This document shows, piece by piece, positions 1 to 30,210 of a stretch of DNA of 64,000 nt. A program made the position numbers and the translations under genes. Every line of letters begins with the position of its first letter. The stretch's first letter is position 1. The notes below the pieces were generated by a model. The model ran no database searches, was not told the origin of the DNA, and saw only the letters and a list, made by a program, of their open reading frames with translations. The stretch spans positions 248,001 to 312,000 of the forward strand of contig MCFH01000013.1 in NCBI GenBank assembly GCA_002104945.1, in the 5' to 3' direction. The DNA comes from Piromyces finnis finn (taxonomy: Eukaryota; Fungi; Neocallimastigomycota).

Positions 1-1915
1 ACATTGAATTCAGTCAAAGTCAATTATTAGGAGATGATATTACTACTGAAGATTTAATTAATGTCATTATGGAAGGTTCATCTTCAGCTCCAGTTGCTGC
101 ACCAGTTGCTGCACCAGTTGTCGCTCCAGTTGTTGCTCAATCATTTGTTGCTCCAGCTCCAGTTTCTGTTCCAGTTTCTGCCCCAGTTGCTGTTCAACCA
201 AGATCATTCCAACCAACCCCAGTTGCTTCTGTTCAACCAAGAGTTGCTCCAGTTCCAGTTACTGCTTCAGCTCCAGTTGCCCCAGTTGCTGCTGCTAAGC
301 CATCTAGTGGTCTCAACAAGGGTAAATTAACTAAGGATATCTCTGAAAAGCTACAAAGTATGTTAGGTTTAATTGATGAAGAAATTGATGTTACTATTCC
401 ACTTCGTGTCTATGGTTTAGATTCCTTAACTGCTATGGAATTAACCAAATGGATTGAAAGTGAAATGAATATTGAATTCAGTCAAAGTCAATTATTAGGA
501 GATGATATTACTACTGAAGATTTAATTAATGTTATTATGGAAGGTTCATCTTCAGCTCCAGTTGCTGCACCAGTTGCTGCACCAGTTGTCGCTCAATCAT
601 TTGTTGCTCCAGCTCCAGTTTCTGTTCCAGTTTCTGCCCCAGTTGCTGTTCAACCAAGATCATTCCAACCAACTCCAGTTGCCTCTGTTCAACCAAGAGC
701 TGCTCCAGTTCCAGTTGCTGCTTCAGCTCCAGTTGCCCCAGTTGCTGCTGCTAAGCCATCTAGTGGTCTCAACAAGGATAAATTAACTAAGGATATCTCT
801 GAAAAGTTACAAAGTATGTTAGGTTTAATTGATGAAGAAATTGATGTTACTATTCCACTTCGTGTCTACGGTTTAGATTCCTTAACTGCTATGGAATTAA
901 CCAAATGGATTGAAAGTGAAATGAACATTGAATTCAGTCAAAGTCAATTATTAGGAGATGATATTACTACTGAAGATTTAATTAATGTCATTATGGAAGG
1001 TTCATCTTCAGCTCCAGTTGCTGCACCAGTTGCCGCTCCAGTTGTTGCTCAATCATTTGTTGCTCCAGCTCCAGTTTCTGTTCCAGTTTCTGCCCCAGTT
1101 GCTGTTCAACCAAGATCATTCCAACCAACTCCAGTTGCCTCTGTTCAACCAAGAGCTGCTCCAGTTCCAGTTACTGCTTCAGCTCCAGTTGTCCCAGTTG
1201 CTGCTGCTAAGCCATCTAGTGGTCTCAACAAGGATAAATTAACTAAGGATATTTCTGAAAAGTTACAAAGTATGTTAGGTTTAATTGATGAAGAAATTGA
1301 TGTTACTATTCCACTTCGTGTCTACGGTTTAGATTCCTTAACTGCTATGGAATTAACCAAATGGATTGAAAGTGAAATGAACATTGAATTCAGTCAAAGT
1401 CAATTATTAGGAGATGATATTACTACTGAAGATTTAATTAATGTCATTATGGAAGGTTCATCTTCAGCTCCAGTTGCTGTTCCAGCTGTTGCTCCAGCAC
1501 CAGTTGCTGCCCCAGTTGCTGTTCAACCAAGATCATTCCAACCAACTCCAGTTGCCGCTCCAATAACTGTAGTATCTGCTCCTGTAGTTGCTCCAACCCC
1601 AATTAGATCAATCCAACCAACTCCAGTCGTTGCTCCAGTCGTTGCCCCAGTTGCCGCTGCTAAGCCATCTAGTGATCTCAACAAGGATAAATTAACTAAG
1701 GATATCTCTGAAAAGTTACAAAGCATGTTAGGTTTAATTGATGAAGAAATTGATGTTACTATTCCACTTCGTGTCTACGGTTTAGATTCCTTAACTGCTA
1801 TGGAATTAACCAAATGGATTGAAAGTGAAATGAATATTGAATTCAGTCAAAGTCAATTATTAGGAGATGATATTACTACTGAAGATTTAATTAATGTTAT
1901 TATGGAAGGTTCATC
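1..1915 (+). repeat. Coding tandem repeat, about 453-468 bp unit (ACP + linker)
   Basis: The ATGGAAGGTTCATCTTCAGCTCCAG anchor recurs at 69, 537, 993, 1449 and 1902. The ACP-coding parts are nearly identical at nucleotide level. Confidence 0.95.
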
Positions 1916-2471
1916 TTCAGCTCCAGCTGCTGTTTCAGTTGCTTCCCCAATTCAATCAAAATCATTTCAACCAGTAAGTGCAATGAATAGTATATTATCT
2001 AATAACGAAGTTATTAATACTTATTATAATGCTGCACCAATTAATAAGCCAACTACAAGTATTGCTGATAGTGACAGTACAGTTGATGCATCTATCGGCA
2101 GCCAATATAATGAAACCATTATTACTGACAATTTAAATAAAACTCAAGTTGTCACTGGAAATAAACAAGAAATTATAAAAAATTTAAAGAATGAAGTTAT
2201 TACCAAATTACAAGATTTATTAGGATTAGTAGATGAAGAAATAGATGTTAACGTTCCATTACAAGTTTATGGTTTAGATTCTTTAACTTCAATGGAAATT
2301 GTTAAATGGATTGAAAATGATAAGAATGTTGATCTTCCACAAACTGCATTATTAAATAGTGAAATCACAACAGAAGAACTTATTAATATGATTGCAACTA
2401 AGATTGTTGGTGAAGATACCATTAAAGCACCATCCTACGATCAATATATGGGCAATGAATTATTTATTTAA
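1..2471 (+). CDS. 3' end of a polyketide synthase/FAS-type megasynthase with tandem acyl carrier protein (ACP) domains; 5' part lies outside the window
   Basis: The reading frame is open from the left edge (frame of nt 3, IEFSQSQLLGDDITTEDLINVIM) to TAA at 2469-2471. The ACP motif YGLDSL, containing the phosphopantetheine Ser, has Ser codons at 423, 879, 1335, 1788 and 2280. The C-terminal end of one more ACP copy occupies about 1-70. Copies are separated by Ala/Pro/Val-rich linkers. Confidence 0.88.
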   Translation, partial: IEFSQSQLLGDDITTEDLINVIMEGSSSAPVAAPVAAPVVAPVVAQSFVAPAPVSVPVSAPVAVQPRSFQPTPVASVQPRVAPVPVTASAPVAPVAAAKPSSGLNKGKLTKDISEKLQSMLGLIDEEIDVTIPLRVYGLDSLTAMELTKWIESEMNIEFSQSQLLGDDITTEDLINVIMEGSSSAPVAAPVAAPVVAQSFVAPAPVSVPVSAPVAVQPRSFQPTPVASVQPRAAPVPVAASAPVAPVAAAKPSSGLNKDKLTKDISEKLQSMLGLIDEEIDVTIPLRVYGLDSLTAMELTKWIESEMNIEFSQSQLLGDDITTEDLINVIMEGSSSAPVAAPVAAPVVAQSFVAPAPVSVPVSAPVAVQPRSFQPTPVASVQPRAAPVPVTASAPVVPVAAAKPSSGLNKDKLTKDISEKLQSMLGLIDEEIDVTIPLRVYGLDSLTAMELTKWIESEMNIEFSQSQLLGDDITTEDLINVIMEGSSSAPVAVPAVAPAPVAAPVAVQPRSFQPTPVAAPITVVSAPVVAPTPIRSIQPTPVVAPVVAPVAAAKPSSDLNKDKLTKDISEKLQSMLGLIDEEIDVTIPLRVYGLDSLTAMELTKWIESEMNIEFSQSQLLGDDITTEDLINVIMEGSSSAPAAVSVASPIQSKSFQPVSAMNSILSNNEVINTYYNAAPINKPTTSIADSDSTVDASIGSQYNETIITDNLNKTQVVTGNKQEIIKNLKNEVITKLQDLLGLVDEEIDVNVPLQVYGLDSLTSMEIVKWIENDKNVDLPQTALLNSEITTEELINMIATKIVGEDTIKAPSYDQYMGNELFI

Positions 2472-4280: not shown

Positions 4281-6187
4281 TTACATTACTATACAACATC
4301 CAGCTTCACTGTTCTTCTTTGAACTATGCTTTGAACTTTCTCTTGGAACAACTGGTCTTTGTTTTGGTAAATTTAAATCTTTAAGTTCAATATTATTATT
4401 TCTAAGTTGATTATCTTCTGATTTATTATCTGATTCTGATTCAGGTTCAGGTTCAGGTTCAGTTCTATGAAGATTTTCTTCAGCATCTAAAATATAGAAT
4501 AAATAGGTGGGTGTTTTGACAATTAATTATATATTATCTTGATAATTATTAGATAAATAATACAAATATATTAAATACATTACCATTATAACGATTAAAG
4601 AATTCAGACCAATCATTATCATGTTCAATTTTTGCCATATCATCGAGGAAACCTTTCTTTGGTGGAAGAGGTGTTCTTTCTTTTGGTGATTCTTCTGGGT
4701 GAGTTATACGTTGTTCAGCTAAATAAGCACGACGAATTATAATTTTTTCTTCTTCAATCTTTCTTCTACGAGTATCGATTTCTTGTTGTTGCTTTAGTAT
4801 TTCCATAGCTTCTTCTAATTCTTTTTGCTCTTGTTCTAACTTTTTTCTTTCTTCCATAAGTTTTCTTCTTTCAGCTTCAACATCAAATGACATTTTCTTA
4901 TATTCTTCATTATTTATATTATTGATTTGTCCATTTTCTCCATAAAGTTGTTGAAGTTGTTCTTCCTTTTGTAAGAGAAGGGTTCTTCTTTTTTCGTTAT
5001 TTTTATTTCTTTCTTTAACATCTTGTGATCTTCTCATTAATTGTTGACGTTGTTGTTCCCAATTTTGAATTTCTTCAGCTTCGGCCTTTAATCTTTCTTG
5101 TCTTTCATATTCAGCTTGTTTTTCTTTTCTTTCTCTTTCTTCCTTTTCTCTACGAATCTTTTCTAATCTTTGGTTTTCTAATTCCATTTGTTTTCTGGCC
5201 TTTTGTTCTCTTTCTGCTTCACGTCTATGCTGTCTTTCTCTTTCTCTAGCTTCTTCTTCTTCTCTTTCTCTTTGTAATTGAAGTTGACGTTGTCTTTCTC
5301 TTTCTCTAGCTTCTTCTTCTTCTTTTTCTTTTTGTAATTGAATTTGACGTTGTCTTTCTCTTTCTTCTTCTTCTTCTTTTCTTCTCTTTTCTTCTGCTTC
5401 ACGTCTAGCCTTAGCTTCTAAATATTCTTCTCTTTGAGCTGGAGTCATACGTCTAATTTTTCTTTCTTCTTCTAATTGTTCAAATCTCATTTTTTGAATC
5501 TTCCATTTTTCAGCCTTTTCTTTTTCTCTTCTTTCTTCTTCTAATCTACGTTCTTCTTCTTCTCTTTGCTTTTGTAATTTTTTATCTTCTTCAATCTTCT
5601 TTTTAACTAATAAAGCTTTTTCAAAAGCTTGTTGTTCACTTCTTGCCAATTCTCTTAATCTTTCTTCTTCCTTTTGCTTTAATGTTTCTTTCTTTTGTTT
5701 TTCAAAATCATCCATATGTTGTTTTTGTTCTTTTGATTGTTCCAAATACATTTCATTTTGCATTTTTATACGACGTTGTTCTTCTAATAATTTTTCATTT
5801 TGACTTTGCATTAATTTTTCTTTAAGAATATGAGCTTTTTCATATACTTCATTTTCTCTATCTTGAATTTTTAATTGTTGTTCTCTTTCATTTTGTAAAC
5901 GTTGTTTTTTAACATTATCTTCAAAAGCTGTTAAAGCGTTAATTCTATCACTGTTACCAGCTTCTCTGAGTTTTTGACGTTCGTTTTCGACGTTAACTGG
6001 AGAATCTGGTCTCATCATAACTAAAGGTGAAGCTGGTCTACTATTATTACTTGGTGAAAACTTTTATTAAAATAAAATAAATATATATATATTAAAATAA
6101 TTTATTAATTAATCCTTTGCTCATTATAATTAAGGTAATTTATTAATTAATTTTTTCTTATTATAATGTAATTTAAATCTTTACCAT
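4281..6187 (-). CDS. Glu/Arg/Lys-rich helical (coiled-coil/SAH-like) protein with C-terminal CaaX box, about 561 aa
   Basis: Extends ORF 4549..6018. The proposed exons are ATG only at 6187-6185, then 6060-4584, then 4486-4281, with GT-AG introns in consistent phase. The last exon reads ...KKNSEAGCCIVM*. The ATG-only first exon is inferred. Confidence 0.75.
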
Positions 6188-17900: not shown

Positions 17901-20301
17901 TTATACAGATTGTTTCCTAGATAGAGTTAATACAGATGCAAAGGTTTATAGAAATTCATTTGTTGATCAAGGTAATTATAATAATTCATATTATTTTTTT
18001 TAATAATTAAAACAACATAATATATATATAGAATAAAAATGACTTTTCATATTTACTCATTAATATGAAACTATATATAGAACACAGAAATTATGTTGGT
18101 AATCAACAATGTGTTGGAGGACCATTTATTATATCGATAAAAAAACTAAAAAAGAGTCAATCCATTGATCCAAAAACAGAAGATGCAGCATATCAAGCTA
18201 TAGTTAGAATTAAAGATGTAAGGAATAAAATTAAGGCATAATTATATTTTATAAAATAAATATTATTAATAAAAACAATTTATTATTTTTTTTTTTTTAA
18301 AAAAAAAAGGTCCCAGAAATAATTGTATTAATACCATCAGTAACAGTTCGAGTTCAAGCAAAATTAAGATCATCAACATCATGGAAATCTGTAATACAAG
18401 CAATTCACCCTGAAATAAATATTAATAATGTTTGTAAAATAAAAGAAAAAGATAAAGGTTTCCAAAAAAAATTAATGGATTTAGATGAATTCCAAGTAAT
18501 TAATTTGAGAAAAAAGAATTTTTTTTATTTAATATTAAATATATATATTATATTATGAAAATAAATTAATAATATTTATATTTTTTTTAGTGTGTATCAA
18601 AATATAAGTTTGGGATATTATATGCTAAAGAAGGTCAAACATCAGAAGAAGAAATGTTCAATAATGGTAATAATTATTTTAAGTTTTATAAATCATAATA
18701 AAACGAATATCAATTATTTATCTATTGACCTATTTATTATTTATAACTTTAAGAAAATGGAAGTCCAGCATTTGATGAATTTCTATCGATTCTTGGTGAG
18801 ACGGTACCTTTAAAAAATTATACTGGATTTTCTGCTGGTTTAGATGTTCAATATGGTAATACTGGTGATACAACTGTAGTAACGAAGGTAACTTATAAAA
18901 ATGTTTTTTTTTTTTTTTTTAAATTAATAAAATTATATATTAACAATTTTTTACATATTAAAAATTATCAATTATAGTGGAGAGATTATGAAGTTACATA
19001 TCATGTATCTACAATGTTACCTTATGTTAAAGATGATATACAACAGATTCAAAGAAAAAGACATATAGGAAATGGTAATAATAATAATAATAATAATAGA
19101 AAAAAGATTGATATTTAATATATAATTTTATATAAATTTTAAAATAACTCTATACTCTATGTATACAATATATTAAATAAAATAAAAATATTATCCATTT
19201 TTATTTTAAATCTATATTTTCTGTCCTTTATAAATATATTCTTCAAAAAAAAATTTATAGATATTGTATGCTTCATATTTTTGGATGGAAAATCAAAATT
19301 TGATCCTAGTACCATAGTATCACAATTTTTACATGTATTTATAGTTGTTCAACCTTTACAACCAGAGGAAAGTTTAGGTATAGGCTATAGAGTAACAATA
19401 GTATCAAAAACTGATGTACCAATATTTGGACCACCATTACCACCATCCGGTATTTTCCATAATATTTCATCTTTAAGAGACTTTTTATTAGCTAAAAGTA
19501 TTAATGGTGAAAATGCTGCCTATTTAGCTCCAAAATTCTATAAACCACAGTTAAGAACTCGTGGTGCTTTAATTGAAGATTTAGTTAAAGATTATTATGA
19601 AGTTACATCCAATATTAACTCCTCATTATCTTTAAATAATATGGCAAGCCTTGGAACAACCTCAACTATATCTCAATCACCGACAAATGGTACAATACGA
19701 TCTCTTGATGAAAATTGTTTTAAAGAAAAGAAAAATAATGCAGCGACACCCTCAATAACAATATTAGAAGAAGAAGATAAATATAATGATGATGAAATTT
19801 TACCAATTAAGAAAACACGTAGCATAAATAACCTAAATGATAACGCTATGGAAATGAGTGAATCAAGACTAAGTCGGTATGATTCATTTGATTCCTTAAC
19901 TGTCAAAAATCAAAACTCAAAAAATAATTGTAAATAATTTTTTAACAATTTTTTTTTTTTATATTAATATTTATATAATATTATAAATGAAAACAATATT
20001 AATAATATATTAATATATTATTAATATCTTTATATATATTATCCTTTCCTTTTGAAAAAAAAAAAAAAAAATAGTAATGCATAGATCACAAAATTCTATT
20101 GCATCAGATAATGGTAAGAAAAATATATTATAAATATTAAATATAATTTGTTATTAAAAAAATTTTTTTTTTCTATTTTTTATTTTATATATATATATAT
20201 ATAAAGGTGACAAAAAGAAATCGATAAGTTCTTTATTTTCATCAATTAGTAACTTAGGAAAAAGTAAACCTCATGGAGCTTCAACAGCTCAAACTAAATA
20301 A
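14955..20301 (+). CDS. LIM-domain + Rap/Ran-GAP domain protein, multi-exon
   Basis: Four short 5' exons splice to [62 protein letters not shown], a LIM zinc pattern. Later exons give [68 protein letters not shown] and [11 protein letters not shown], which are Rap1GAP-family motifs including the Asn thumb. Stop at 20299-20301. Confidence 0.85.
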
Positions 20302-20896: not shown

Positions 20897-23327
20897 TTAT
20901 GCTTGATATTCATATTTTGGATAATTGTATCCGTCACCCAAACTAAATTAATATTTATGAAAAAAGTAAATATATTTAAAATTAAATATTAATACTATTA
21001 AAAAAAATAATAAATCAATAATTTGATAATATATTTTATTTACCTTGAAGGTACAGGGATTAACCAAAGTTTTGGATTCTTTCCAAAAACTTGATAAAAG
21101 TTTTCTAATTTTCCAAGGTCATATGGATTATGTAAAACACTTTTTGGTATATTTTTAGTACTTGCTGATACAAATCTTGGTGAACGATTGCTTGGATAAT
21201 TAAATTCTTTAATTTTTTTATCTAATAGGGATTTTTTCATAGAAAGTTCCTTTTTTATTTCTTCAATATTTGGTGAATCTAAGGATGAATTAACCTCTTG
21301 TTCTAATTCCTTAACTTCAGTTTCTAATTTTTCTATTTCTTTCTTTCTATGTTCTCTTATAATCTTGAAACGATAGTTACGAATTTCATCTTGTTTACCA
21401 AATAATTCTAATGTAGTTCGATTTCCAAGTAAATTTTGGAAAACATGTGATAAAAATAAAATTAAAATAGAACATCCCAATACAAAAGAGAAGAAAAGAT
21501 GAATAATCCATAATTTTTTATTTCCTGGTATAATTACTAAATTTTCTATAAACTTTTATATGTAATTTTTATATAATATATAGTAGAAGTTAGGATATTA
21601 TCATATAATTAATAATAAACAAAATTAGTTATTTTTATAAATATATAAAAAATAGAAAAAATCTTTTGATATTAATAATTATTCTTATAAATATATAGAA
21701 AATAGAAAAAAACTTGATATTAATGATCTTACATCAATGCTAAAATCTACAGTAGAAATAAATGTTATTAATATTGTAATAAATTGGAATGGAATGTATA
21801 TTGAACCATATAATAAGAATAACATGAAATATTTATAATTATAAAACCCAACACAATTACTTATCCTTTAAAATTATATATTATTGATTATAGATAAATA
21901 ATATTACAAACAATGTTTTATGTAGAGTTTATTTTTATATTATTATAATACTTTAATACTTACCATGGACAATGACTATTTTTTTTTTTTTTTTTTTTTT
22001 GAAAATCATATTTAAATAGATAATATTTTATGTATATTATAGAGTTAGCTATATATTTAATTTGATAAAGTATATTTTATATTTATATATTAAAGAATTC
22101 TTACTGATCCATCTTTAATACACATCTATATAAATAGAATGGAAAAATGAGGTTAATGAAAAAAGTTATATTTTTATAGCAAACTTATTTAGTGTATATA
22201 TTGTATATATTACCTTTTACAAACAGAACAATGATGAGTTCTTTCTGGTTTAAATCCTAAACATTTTTTACAAATTAAATTATTGATTTCTTCATTATCT
22301 TCTTTAGGTGATCTTTTTTCATTATTATTTTCATCATGTAATTCTTCACTAGAATTATTGTTATTTAATTTTTTAATGTTTCTTTCTAATATCATATCAT
22401 TATCAATATCAATACTAATTTGATCTTTTTTCCCACTACGGTTAAATATAGCATTTCCTGATGTTTGAGATTCTCTAAACATTAGTGAATTCATATTAAT
22501 AATAGTTTCTTTTTGTGGTAATAGTGGGTTATTTTCTGAAGATTTTGAAAATCTTTCATCTGAGGATGAGGATATAATATCATTTAATGGTATATCATTT
22601 TTATACTCGTTATTTTGATTATTATTAGTTAATGAAGATAAAGATATATTTTTATTTTGCATTTTTTCATTTTGTAATAATGCACCTGTTGATTGATGTG
22701 AAGCGTCTGAAGAAGCAGATTCAGTCATCTTTTTATATTCTGGAAGTTCTTCAAGTGTTGTATAAAATGATGCTAATTCATCTCCTGATAATACATTTAC
22801 TACATCCTATATTTTATAAATCATTACAGAAATCAGAAATAATAAAATTTATATATATTATTATTGGAAAAACAAATATATATATATACGCTTATTTATT
22901 TGTTTCGTTTTATTTTGTTTTTTAATAAACACTTATAATTTACCTTTGTTGGAGAGCCAGGATCTGAAAATGTTACCATTATATAACTATAAGTGAAAAA
23001 TACTAATATTACATTATATATTACAACATATATTATTCCTTGAACTATATAACCATCAGAAAATAAACCCCCTGTTTATTATTATTATCATATATAAGAA
23101 TTTTTAAGAAAATTAATTAATGTTTATTCAATTTTTTTATAGTAATAGATTTAAACTTTGAGCTATTCAATATATATAATAATTTTAATTCTAATGTAAA
23201 TTTTAATTATTAAAAATGTACAACACTTACGACAATAATTAAAATTATAATCAATAAAAGAAGCTATTATCAATCCAAAAACAAGAAGGACAGGAAAGTA
23301 CTGACCTATATTCCTTCTCATATACAT
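20897..23327 (-). CDS. DHHC palmitoyl-acyltransferase (Pfa3/ZDHHC2-15-20-like), multi-exon
   Basis: Spliced [48 protein letters not shown], with hydrophobic TM segments, NRTTLE (TTxE motif) and NPYDLG..NFYQVFG..WLIP (PaCCT-like). The last exon reads SLGDGYNYPKYEYQA*. Confidence 0.92.
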
Positions 23328-26109: not shown

Positions 26110-29100
26110 ATGAATACAATAACAAAAAAAAGAATATTATCACCAATTGTAGAAGTCATCTCTGAATTAATTATATTGAATGAAGAAGTTACAGAAAATG
26201 ATTCAGATTTTCCTGATATAACTAATTTTGCCAATGCGGTATCAAAGCAAATTAAACAAGTTGTAAATGTTTGTTATACATACATGAATAGTCTTAAGGA
26301 AGATGAAGAATTACAAAAAAGTATGCCAATAGGATGCGAAGAAGGTATGGTTTAATTACAATAAATTAAAACAAATTAAATATACTGCTTCTGTTATTAT
26401 TATTATTATTATTATTATAATTAAAAACTTGAATGCAAAAAGATATTATTATACCCTATTGGAATCATATTTATTTTTTCTATTTTATTTTCATACTCAG
26501 GATTAGAAATATATATAAAATCATAATGAATAGAAATTCAAATTTAATTAATATGTAATTATTATAAAATATATAAAAATTTTTATGTATAATATATATT
26601 AGTATTGGGAGCATCTGAATTATTAATTCACTCAGCCGAACTATTAAAGGAAAATTCAAAAAGTAAGGAAGGACGAGATAACTTGGTTGAATCTATTCAA
26701 AATATACTTTCAGGAATAACAAAAGTATTAGATATTTATGATGAAGCTGAAATTCGTAAAATAAAAACAATTTGTAAGCATATTCATGAACTTATTGATG
26801 ATTCAAATCAAGAAAAGTCAGTTCAGGAATCTATTGGTACATTACGTCAATTATCACAGTGTTCAATGGCATTGGCAACACAAATAAAAAATAGAATACC
26901 AGAATTATTATCTGAACAATCACAATTACATTTACGCATATCCATTGAAACAATATCAAAAATTACACCATTACTTTTAAATTCATATAAAGCTATGCTT
27001 AAAGATTCCAAATCAGGAAATGTATTATCTTCAAAAGATCTTATATGTAACATTTTGCAAAATACCTGTAATGATGTTGACAATATAGTAAGTGATACCT
27101 CAACAAAAACCATAGAAACTTCAAAGGTAAATTTTATAATTTTAAAAAAAATTATAAAATATTTATTGATATTTATTTATTTTTTCATTTATAAAACAAA
27201 AACTTCTTTAACACTATTATACTACTTTTTTATATATTTTAAATGAAATAATAATCCTTATTGAAATTAAAATTATAATTCAATATTCAATATAATAATA
27301 TTTAAAAGGGTGGAGCAATAACTCAAAAATTAGAGGAAGTTCAAAATCAACAATTCATATTTCAACAATTTTATTCTAAAAAACAATACAAAGAAGCTTT
27401 TGATATATTGAAAAAGTATCTATCCAGTTATAATATTGTATTGGATTATATATATGGTATTTAATTATTTTTTATTTTTTTATTTTTATATATATATTTA
27501 GTTTATATAAAGTATCAGATTGAAATATTCGCTATAATTATTAAACCAAATTTTTTTAACTCTATTTTTTTTTTTATAAAATAATAAAATAGATCACCTT
27601 CCATCCATTTATGACTCTTATCAAAAACAAAATATCAATTCAACGATTGGATTATTAAAAAGAAAGGAAGTTGATTTCAAAGCACTTATGAATAATTGTG
27701 AAAAGAGTAATTATCCATATTCATTAAGAAATCAATTAAGTGCTGAATTAGAATATAGAACCGAATATTTATTGTATATTAAGGAACAATTTAATAAATC
27801 GGTCATATCATCTATTGTAACTATCTCAGAAGAAATTGCGAATCATAAGGATGAAAATTCTATTCTTGGTGTATACGTTCAACATACTAAAACTGGGGAC
27901 TTGGGTAATATAAATTTACAACAATATCACGAACAGCAAGTTAGCTATTTCATTGATAGTCAAAATAAAATGAATCAACTGAAAAAATATCAAGAAATTG
28001 AAAAAGAATTAAATAATAGCAATGATGAAATAAAGCAATCAATGTTAGATAAAGTTGAAGGTGTCAATGATTGCGTAATAAATGCATTGAACATTTATAA
28101 AAATGAATTTGTATTTATTTTAAAACGTGTAGTTAATTTACTTTCTACGGATAACTTACAAATACATAAGGATGTTATCCTTAGAAAGATCAATACCATT
28201 GACCAATTCTATCCATTAATAATAAAAATTGGTAATGCTGTAAATAATAATAAAGATGAAACCAATGTTAATTTATTTTATGATAATGTCATTAATACAT
28301 GGGAATATCTTGTCAATGATGTAAAATCTTATATTATTAATCAAGAAGGTGTCTTTTCAATGAAAGATCTTTTGGATAGTTCAAGTAAGTAATAATACTA
28401 ATCATTTCAAATATTTCTGAAAAATTGAGAATTAAATAAAATAAACATTTTAATCGATACTAAAGATAATGGCAATAATAATAATTAATAATAATAAAAA
28501 AAATTTTTTTTATTTAAAAAATGATTTCCTCCCATAACTAGGTCTTAATATTAATGGGCATATCAAAGCTCTTTGTCGAAAGGATGATCATAACATTGAT
28601 GATTTTTCAACGGAATATAAATCAATTTTAGCAACAGTAAATCAATTAGTTGATATTTCAAAAAATGAATGTAATAATACAGAGGATCTTTCCTATCGCG
28701 ACAAATTGAAAAAATCAATAAAAGAAATTAAAAATGGTAATTTTTTTTTTTATTTTTATTTTTATTTTATCTTTTATTATTTATTTATTTAATTAGAGTT
28801 ATAGGATTATATACTTATGTATTTTAATATATAGAAATGAAATATATTAGTAAAAATGTAAATAATCATGAAATAAAAGATTCCACCAGAGAAACCTTTG
28901 AAAAATTGAATGAAGCATTAAGTGCTGAAGATACTTCAATATTAATTTCTGATATGACCTTTGCTGATCTTAGTCAAGCACCACTTCAACAAAGAGAAGA
29001 GTTAGGAAGACTAAAATTCATTGATATTAAAAGTCATTTAACTCAATTAAAAGAAAAAGTCGAAACCTTAGACCAAATCATTCGTATTAATCATCGATAC

Positions 29101-30210
29101 TCTATATCAAGAGAATTACCACCAACACCGCCAGCCGCCATGAAAAAAAGTGATAAAGCTGATTATCTCCATCATTTATCTCCACTTTCCCTTAATAATA
29201 GTAAAAATGGTGGCTTGAATTCACCACTATCACCACTTTCTCAACGTCCTCTCCTCTCCCCGGCTACACCCACTCGTCCAAATCTTAGATCACAACAAAA
29301 TTTCACCACCAATAGTGCTGTTGGTAATACAAGTTTTAATGCAGGAAATCAAAGCTTTTATTATCAATCTCCCTTGGCCGATAAAAATGCCATTATTCAG
29401 CCAATGAATAAGGAGGATGCTATAAAGAATCCAATTAGAGCAGTAGCATGTGATTTAAAAATGGCTGCCTCTAAATGGAATCATAAAGATAATCTCATTA
29501 TTGATAAAGCAGACATTATTGCGCAAAAATTAGATGAACTATCGTATTACAATCAAGTGATTCGTAGTAATCCTTCAGCAAAAAAGATGTTAATTCGAAC
29601 AGCACAAGATATGATGAATCATTGCACCAGTATATTAAACTATGCCAAAGAGATATGTGAAACTTGTACCGATAAACGATTAAAGCTTCAACTTCTTAAT
29701 ACAGTAGAACGTATTCATACCATTGGACAACAGTTAAAGGTTGTAGTTGCCGTCAAATCTGGAAGTCGATTTGATATGGATGGAGATAAACAACTTGTGA
29801 CCTGTGCCAGCAATTTAGTTGAAGCCGTGAAAAGTTTATTAAGTGATTCTGAGGCTGCCTGTCTTCGATCAAACTTTATGCAGCAAAAATTGGAAGAAGA
29901 AGAAGAAGAAAAAGAAAAAAAAAGAAAAGAAGCAGATATTAATCAACATGAACAAAATAAGTTGAATAAAGAGCAAGAAATAAAAGAAGCTATTCAACAT
30001 CAACGTCAACAACACCACCAACAGGAAGAAGAAAAGACAGAAATTCAATATTCTCAGGAACAACAACAGCAAGAAGAAGAAGATACCAATGCATCTCTTC
30101 ATGAAGTCATTGAAGCATCACCATCAATATCAACAAAAGAAAATAACATTTCCCTATCCAAATCTGAAGATTTTATTCTACCTCAAGATATTTATGATAA
30201 TATTTCATAA
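26110..30210 (+). CDS. Vinculin/alpha-catenin family protein, multi-exon
   Basis: The N-terminus RILSPIVEVISELIILNEE..FPDITNFANAVSKQIKQVV resembles the vinculin head. A Pro-rich hinge ELPPTPPA follows. The C-terminal NPIRAVACDLKMAASKWNHKDN..AKEICETCTDKRLKLQLLNTVERIHTIGQQLKVV..LVTCASNLVEAVK matches the vinculin tail helical bundle (KWSSKGND, CTDKRIR, ERIPTISTQLK). Confidence 0.85.

Follow-up and report, generated by a model that had tools for sequence, protein, structure and literature searches.

The first 2,471 nucleotides of the stretch of Piromyces finnis DNA analyzed here (64,000 nucleotides, G000:C35:248001-312000, referred to as the window) are the 3' end of a five-exon gene. The gene product is a 3,841-residue synthase that opens with a pyridoxal phosphate (PLP)-dependent alpha-oxoamine synthase (AONS) domain and continues with ketosynthase (KS), acyltransferase (AT), dehydratase (DH), enoyl reductase (ER), and ketoreductase (KR) domains and eight acyl carrier proteins (ACPs). 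We refer to it as the AONS-PKS (polyketide synthase) gene. On balance, we favor the view that it encodes a self-contained amino-lipid synthase, from which the finished chain is released in cis by the AONS head in a manner resembling that of the fumonisin enzyme Fum8.

Domain organization of the AONS-PKS gene

The P. finnis genome assembly comprises 56.46 Mb in 232 contigs, with approximately 18% G+C outside genes. A single open frame of 3,600 codons (C35:239669-250468) was found to run into the window. Pfam analysis of this frame revealed, in order, the C-terminal half of an aminotransferase-fold domain (Aminotran_1_2), KS, AT, DH, ER, KR, and eight PP-binding domains. The N-terminal half of the aminotransferase-fold domain sits in four short upstream exons. 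The complete gene (G000:C35:238270-250471, plus strand, equivalent to window positions -9730 to 2471) has 3,841 codons. Exons 1 to 4 (C35:238270-238470, C35:238645-238846, C35:238944-239177, and C35:239285-239377, all on the plus strand) were mapped to an ortholog from Anaeromyces robustus, P0001, which they match at 84 to 95% identity, and exon 5 (C35:239676-250471, plus strand) was taken from the open frame. The introns are canonical (GT-AG). The head was analyzed exon by exon and via P0001.

Inspection of the open frame revealed the catalytic motifs of each domain. The KS (PF00109/PF02801, E values of 2e-72 and 8e-30) contains the TACSAS, HGTGT, and NTGH motifs that make up the Cys-His-His triad, and the AT (PF00698, E value of 5e-50) contains GHSMG together with a malonyl-like QAFHS motif. 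The reducing loop is complete, with PS-DH, ADH_zinc_N, and KR matches; the DH has a His...Pro motif and DxxxQ, the ER has GGVG, and the KR has its glycine loop and Tyr. No methyltransferase domain was found in the gene by Pfam and motif inspection. The presence of one KS-AT-DH-ER-KR set suggests that a single module is used iteratively. With a KS, a cis AT, a DH-ER-KR loop, and carriers, the protein is predicted to be an iterative, highly reducing type I polyketide (fatty-acid-like) synthase. The original prediction had described the gene product as a megasynthase of an anaerobic gut fungus and had named the upstream sequence as the place to check this; the upstream frame confirms the description, since it contains a KS and an AT as well as the full reducing loop.

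The N-terminal AONS head

Full-length matches to family models place the head in the AONS family (AONS/KBL/SPT/ALAS). Residues 39 to 418 of P0001 cover the glycine C-acetyltransferase (KBL), BioF, and serine palmitoyltransferase (SPT) models end to end, with E values of 2e-93 for the KBL model, 1e-87 for the BioF model, 8e-85 for the BioF/Kbl subfamily model, and 2e-84 for the bacterial SPT model; P. finnis exons 2 to 5 match NF047600. Every score was below the equivalog cutoff, and the head therefore belongs to no named AONS subfamily. The solved structures nearest to the exon 5 half are KBLs (E value of 3e-25), followed by the Sphingobacterium SPT (E value of 5e-20), and the PLP lysine is aligned with that of these enzymes. 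The AONS residues of the P. finnis protein are intact: the PLP lysine occurs in GTLVKSL, the PLP-stacking His in ELNHTT, and the Asp and His of the DxxH motif in DECH. In an exhaustive search of 1.84 billion protein representatives, the best AONS match outside the gut fungi was only 40% identical. In this library, multidomain proteins that end in an AONS are numerous.

The C-terminal ACP array

The part of the gene that lies in the window (positions 1 to 2471, plus strand) runs from the tail of ACP3 to the stop codon and is the 3' end of exon 5. Frame 3 of the plus strand is open from window base 3, and the stop codon is at 2469-2471. Five complete ACPs are encoded here, with GLDSL motifs starting at positions 414, 870, 1326, 1779, and 2271. 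They are preceded by the C-terminal part of ACP3 (1-77), whose own motif lies 54 bases upstream of the window, and by a 79-residue Pro/Ala/Val-rich linker (78-314). ACP4 (315-545, Ser codon 423-425), ACP5 (771-1001, Ser codon 879-881), ACP6 (1227-1457, Ser codon 1335-1337), and ACP7 (1680-1910, Ser codon 1788-1790) belong, like ACP3, to one sequence type, which we designate type A. An 87-residue linker of other composition, rich in Ser, Asn, and Thr (1911-2171), then leads to the divergent terminal ACP8 (type C; 2172-2402, Ser codon 2280-2282). The remaining segment (2403-2471) encodes a 22-residue tail, conserved in the orthologs, and the stop codon, and contains no release domain. All of these features are on the plus strand.

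The repeat unit is approximately 152 residues long; its ACP core, which carries the GLDSL motif, accounts for approximately 77 of these, and a linker rich in Pro, Ala, and Val comes after the core. Tandem Repeats Finder reported a period of 456, 4.2 copies, 92% matches, and a score of 3069. Across the whole open frame, Pfam recognized eight PP-binding stretches (E value of 3e-80) within the last 1,322 residues, and the phosphopantetheine Ser of GLDSL is present in all eight. Seven of these ACPs are of type A, and their 231-nucleotide cores are 97.4 to 100% identical, with differences that are almost all synonymous; the eighth is approximately 53% identical to type A. The linkers from ACP1 to ACP7 are 74 to 83 residues long and vary from unit to unit, and the linker ahead of the terminal ACP has 87 residues. 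Beyond the last ACP, Pfam detected no thioesterase (TE), reductase (R), or other domain. In sequence, the array ACPs resemble those of eukaryotic iterative PKSs (fungal CTB1 and Dictyostelium PKS16) and not those of PfaA. A Trp position that was considered as a flag for beta-branching is also occupied in the Dictyostelium PKS16 ACP.

These observations agree closely with the original prediction, which had counted five full ACPs plus the end of a sixth and had seen a stop shortly after the last of them, had noted that a C-terminal TE or R domain was lacking, and had judged the ACPs to be of the PKS type and not the PfaA type. Its count of at least six ACPs was right in that the tandem array is long, and the actual total is eight.

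Orthologs, conservation, and expression

A word-based search identified three full-length orthologs with the same Pfam set: P0001 from A. robustus (3,733 residues, 7 ACPs), P0002 from Neocallimastix californiae (4,276 residues, 10 ACPs), and P0003, a JGI model (3,596 residues, 8 ACPs). Their arrays comprise five, eight, or six type A ACPs, respectively, plus one type C ACP and one ACP of a further type (type B), which occupies the penultimate position, after the type A ACPs and ahead of the terminal one, and is not found in P. finnis. The type A protein sequence is almost invariant, both within arrays and between genera, and the repeats are homogenized in DNA within a genome. This combination of homogenized DNA within a genome and protein frozen across genera means that recent expansion alone is an insufficient explanation of the array.

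Identity to the P. finnis protein was 93 to 95% for the AONS, 93 to 94% for the KS, 86 to 88% for the AT, 85 to 88% for the DH, 89 to 92% for the ER, and 87 to 90% for the KR, and fell to as low as 62% in the interdomain linkers. Such identity across genera indicates strong purifying selection on all catalytic domains, including the AONS.

The gene corresponds to "PKS family 1" (PKS1) of the anaerobic fungi, Pirfi3 411080 (Swift et al. 2021, PMC8106346). In the supplementary BLAST table of that study, the antiSMASH gene (3,586 residues) aligns to residues 256 to 3841 of the model (PMC8106346), and the model length that this implies for MycoCosm Pirfi3 411080 equals the 3,841 codons of our five exons. 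The antiSMASH model starts at a Met inside exon 5, so that most of the AONS domain is cut off, and this is probably why the main text of Swift et al. never mentions an aminotransferase. The same authors reported that the PKS genes are transcribed, and their proteomics passage states that all family 1 PKS copies are expressed (SI Appendix, Table S5; PMC8106346). Gene 411080 is also listed among the core genes with methylated promoters (Dataset S8; PMC8106346). The AONS head, the ACP array, and the product of PKS1 are not discussed by Swift et al. (PMC8106346). The suggestion that the system is undescribed consequently holds for the head, the array, and the product and fails for the family, which had been catalogued and reported as expressed. 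We found no description in the literature of a reducing PKS that has 7 to 10 ACPs and an AONS at its N terminus. When the AONS head and the ECH-HMGS tail of a paralog described below were used as queries in word-based searches, gut-fungal proteins alone were returned.

AONS-headed paralogs and a relative outside the gut fungi

Searches with the AONS half, a KS model, and an SPT model revealed four AONS-headed PKS genes in the P. finnis genome. The three paralogs of the AONS-PKS gene are C112 (BCR36DRAFT_316229, the PKS6 of Swift et al.; G000:C112:705860-716284, plus strand), with the domain order AONS-KS-AT-DH-ER-KR-ECH-ECH-HMGS; C113 (G000:C113:686172-692258, minus strand), with the order AONS-KS-AT-ECH-ECH; and C165 (G000:C165:263005-272329, plus strand), in which a divergent AONS is followed by KS-AT-DH-KR. 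The KS Cys-His-His residues are kept in all paralogs. In C112, the PLP Lys of the AONS is replaced by Tyr and the His is lost, and the AT has no GHSxG motif. In C113, the PLP Lys is replaced by Gly and the AT is intact. The divergent AONS-like head of C165 keeps a lysine at the aligned PLP column, and its AT has no GHSxG motif. Among the four AONS heads, only that of the ACP-bearing gene has the full set of catalytic residues.

None of the three paralogs appears to have a carrier of its own. When the whole genome was scanned with PF00550 and each of the 17 candidates was scored, ACPs were found only in the AONS-PKS gene and in unrelated genes, and a family-specific profile used at maximum sensitivity found no ACP in the 20 kb around each paralog. 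The C112 orthologs in other assemblies likewise had no PF00550 match.

The exhaustive search yielded one further AONS-KS fusion, the fragment P0123 (40% identity), which is encoded on contig L019 (JGI metagenome 3300071636, contig Ga0620600_0006472) and is the only such fusion that was found outside the gut fungi. The gene (L019:990-11734) is intron-split and eukaryotic, lies on a contig with 40% G+C, and encodes a live AONS-KS-AT-DH-ER-KR-ACP-ACP-ECH-ECH in one gene; the contig stops before any HMGS. For a KS tree, we used a 175-residue segment contained in a single exon for all aligned sequences; the C161 PKS, whose KS is split at this point, was omitted. The four AONS-headed genes formed one clade (support of 100/99), apart from the other P. 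finnis PKSs, and L019 was sister to this gut-fungal clade (support of 91/84). These relationships suggest, as the simplest history, an undivided ancestor followed by duplication with complementary loss in the Neocallimastigomycota. Under this scenario, the carriers and a live AONS would have remained with one copy, and the branching or extra processing domains would have remained with the others.

Predicted release of the finished chain

AONS enzymes condense an amino acid with an acyl thioester, with loss of CO2, to give a 2-amino-3-ketone and a free thiol. In the mechanism that we propose, a phosphopantetheinyl transferase (PPT) would arm the eight ACPs and the malonyl-type AT would load them. 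Chain building by the KS, KR, DH, and ER would then proceed in parallel on the carriers and yield a saturated, unmethylated acyl chain, and the many ACPs on flexible tethers of 74 to 87 residues would increase the number of chains in progress. The PLP-dependent AONS head would bind a small amino acid (Gly, Ser, or Ala), which would attack the acyl-S-ACP thioester by decarboxylative Claisen condensation, and the product set free would be an amino lipid resembling a sphingoid base, namely, a long-chain 2-amino-3-ketone. Because the AONS head is in the same polypeptide, neither a TE nor an R domain would be needed.

Both ACP-bearing genes, the AONS-PKS gene and L019, keep the PLP lysine of the AONS, and the carrier-less C112 and C113 have lost theirs, which is the pattern expected if the AONS acts on ACP-bound chains. 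No TE, reductase, or acyltransferase was found beside the gene in the approximately 30 kb examined on either side. The original prediction had inferred a need for a trans-acting release enzyme or for transfer of the chain straight to an acceptor. The need for a trans-acting enzyme is not supported and is probably wrong, given that the same polypeptide opens with an intact AONS that is 93 to 95% conserved across genera. As to precedent, the accepted way in which the fumonisin polyketide is released is through Fum8, a stand-alone PLP-dependent AONS, as described in passages of PMC3870968 and PMC12821873 that cite Gerber et al. 2009.

Several points weigh against this proposal. The literature search found no product or functional work for any family member. 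The DH has a Lys where the textbook HxxxGxxxxP motif has Gly. The AONS is N-terminal here, whereas the other AONS fusions examined have it at the C terminus or ahead of unrelated domains. Finally, the closest solved relatives of the head are KBL enzymes, which use acetyl-CoA, and for this reason a CoA-linked side reaction of the AONS head may occur.

The last point also bears on the strongest alternative, in which the AONS head is structural, serves in docking, or acts on CoA and the chain is either released by a hydrolase or acyltransferase acting in trans or passed directly to an acceptor. Such an arrangement would fit a protein with no C-terminal TE or R domain whose nearest solved relatives are acetyl-CoA users, and since two paralogs retain a noncatalytic AONS head, a structural role does exist in the family. 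However, every PLP-site residue of the AONS-PKS is intact, and no other part of the protein is as well conserved as the head; the heads that have decayed are those of the carrier-less C112 and C113, and no candidate release enzyme lies within approximately 30 kb on either side. We therefore regard release in trans as unlikely and as less likely than release in cis by the AONS.

A second alternative is that the protein is a PfaA-like primary lipid synthase, which would make a fatty acid or polyunsaturated fatty acid (PUFA) in free or CoA-bound form and in which the number of ACPs would do no more than scale flux. The protein has a partial match to TIGR02813, its very high conservation hints at a housekeeping-like role, and PfaA proteins typically have at least five near-identical ACPs separated by Ala/Pro-rich linkers. 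Membership in the PfaA family itself was rejected, as the TIGR02813 score was 247 bits against a cutoff of 1010 and the match was limited to KS-AT. The ACPs, moreover, belong to the iterative-PKS type, the array sits at the C terminus behind a complete DH-ER-KR loop, and a live AONS head would be left without a role. In addition, two giant fungal-type fatty acid synthase (FAS) frames with PPT domains of their own are present in the genome. Taken together, these features make a PfaA-like function improbable. Least plausible of all, and in our judgment very improbable, is that the ACP copy number is an assembly artifact: repeat cores that are 97 to 100% identical in DNA are a classic problem for assemblers, but the units can be told apart by synonymous changes and linker lengths, which argues against an artifact, independent assemblies of other genera have 7, 8, and 10 ACPs, and the spliced length of 3,841 codons equals that of the public MycoCosm model, so that, as far as sequence can show, the array appears to be genuine.

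Canonical genes for sphingoid-base synthesis also are present in the genome. C171 encodes an LCB2 (E value of 5e-49 to human SPTLC2 on one exon) and C189 an LCB1-like protein, and TLC-domain matches were found that could be ceramide synthases. The presence of the LCB1 and LCB2 genes means that the AONS-PKS is not the only sphingoid route of the cell, and a role as the sole sphingoid-base synthase was ruled out. The head likewise was rejected as an LCB1 or LCB2 ortholog, given the separate LCB genes and its better match to KBL than to SPTLC2.

A possible split synthase with a shared carrier array

The domain content of the four AONS-headed genes raises a further possibility, which we put forward tentatively: the AONS-PKS gene may be central to a megasynthase divided among several proteins and supply the only ACPs for four paralogous AONS-headed synthases, whose product would be a beta-branched amino lipid. 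C112, C113, and C165 would act in trans on chains that the eight-ACP array carries, the AONS heads of the paralogs might pair with the live head as LCB1 does with LCB2, and the all-in-one L019 gene would represent the undivided ancestral form. Docking with some fifteen or more catalytic domains would explain the near-invariance of the type A ACP, and a shared carrier array would also explain the long tethers. The proteomics passage of Swift et al. reports that both PKS1 and PKS6 are expressed in P. finnis cultures (PMC8106346).

Genomic neighborhood and other loci

Downstream of the AONS-PKS gene, the window contains a Rap-GAP exon (19281-19937, plus strand), a DHHC palmitoyltransferase exon (22210-22728, minus strand), and a vinculin/catenin exon (26605-30210, plus strand). 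Together with PIG-X, these flanking genes match the synteny of the "PKS1" cluster of Swift et al. (PMC8106346), and the order of Rap-GAP, DHHC, and vinculin/catenin is the same as in the PKS1 "cluster" of A. robustus. The PKS1 neighborhood is conserved synteny and not a biosynthetic cluster. Just downstream of the PKS, a 489-residue Glu/Arg/Lys-rich, coiled-coil-like frame without a Pfam match (4549-6018, minus strand) may correspond to the entry beside PKS1 that is named "conserved uncharacterized protein" by Swift et al. A retroelement is present 22 to 27 kb upstream of the window (G000:C35:221159-225694, plus strand), in a 1,512-residue frame with a reverse transcriptase domain (PF00078, E value of 1e-35).

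Several other loci of the genome were noted. The only stand-alone PPT candidate is at C146:687095-687286. Two giant frames of 4,147 and 3,837 residues, with a weak KS and a built-in ACPS (PPT), look like single-chain fungal-type FASs (G000:C160:~499968-502022 and C154:~518498-520573, both on the minus strand). Eight near-identical frames of 503 to 508 residues, arranged head to head or in tandem, match aminotransferase class I/II at approximately 174 bits each (G000:C1:1090936-1095785, C90:458081-470141, and C90:690125-695294). Just downstream of the C165 AONS-PKS, a 229-residue frame (G000:C165:274069-274755, plus strand) has motifs that look like those of the endonuclease/exonuclease/phosphatase group (neutral sphingomyelinase-like).

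Significance and comparison with known systems

Anaerobic gut fungi are important fiber degraders, and their natural products are almost unknown. PKS1 is their most conserved PKS family and is reported to be expressed in culture. The hidden amino-acid-condensing head recasts what was a PKS without a release domain as the predicted source of a nitrogen-containing, sphingoid-like lipid. If this is correct, it would be, among the cases found in this study, the first in which PLP-dependent release is fused in cis to the N-terminal end of a reducing PKS. If the carrier array is shared, four catalogued "PKS genes" would be parts of one machine and would show, in a eukaryote, how complementary loss of domains can split a megasynthase. 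Sphingoid analogs often are bioactive in gut ecosystems, and the product may mediate interactions of the fungus with bacteria or with the host.

The nearest parallels in chemistry are the sphinganine-analog pathways of ascomycetes, described in passages of PMC3870968, PMC12821873, and PMC13612406, namely, those for fumonisin (Fum1 and Fum8), AAL toxin, sphingofungin, and myriocin. Like the Fum1/Fum8 pair, the P. finnis system combines a highly reducing iterative PKS without a TE with a PLP-dependent AONS, here the predicted releaser. Systems of the Fum1/Fum8 type have a separate AONS protein, a cluster with tailoring enzymes, and a PKS with one ACP and a methyltransferase; in P. finnis, by contrast, the AONS is fused N-terminally, there are eight ACPs, and there is neither a methyltransferase nor a cluster. 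A gene cluster of the sphinganine-analog type was considered and rejected, as no AONS or tailoring genes flank the synthase. The KS of the AONS-PKS is not close to those of the other fungal PKSs of the same genome.

An AONS embedded in or at the end of a bacterial PKS or nonribosomal peptide synthetase is found in prodiginine RedL/PigH and saxitoxin SxtA. The P. finnis protein resembles these in having the AONS in cis to a carrier-dependent assembly line (PMC3870968). It differs from the bacterial fusions in that the AONS is N-terminal and not C-terminal, the host is an intron-bearing eukaryote, and the assembly line is an iterative reducing PKS with an ACP array.

In PfaA-type PUFA synthases, the number of ACPs scales output. 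The long run of near-identical ACPs with Ala/Pro-rich linkers between them is shared with P. finnis; the failed model cutoff, the different ACP motif, the full reducing loop, and the AONS head are not. The PfaA array is central, between AT and KR, whereas that of P. finnis is C-terminal, after the KR; the comparison concerns PfaA alone, since its partner subunits (CLF and a FabA-type DH) were not searched for.

Two further systems bear on the paralogs. In mupirocin, virginiamycin, and curacin biosynthesis, tandem ACPs are way stations for HMGS, ECH1, and ECH2 acting in trans (PMC10006238). The gut fungus also has an ECH-ECH-HMGS set, on the carrier-less C112. Beta-branching modules have two or three ACPs, compared with 7 to 10 in the gut-fungal arrays, and here the cassette is fused to a second PKS-like protein. 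As in the LCB1/LCB2 pair, in which one AONS-fold partner keeps the PLP lysine and the second is without it, the gut-fungal heads include live (the AONS-PKS) and dead (C112 and C113) forms. Unlike that pair, the PKS heads exist beside separate canonical LCB genes and are nearer to KBL and bacterial SPT, and any pairing among them is hypothetical. Set against all of these systems, the chemistry and the gene family are known, and what appears to be new, judged from domain content, is the combination of an N-terminal AONS, a reducing PKS, and 7 to 10 ACPs.

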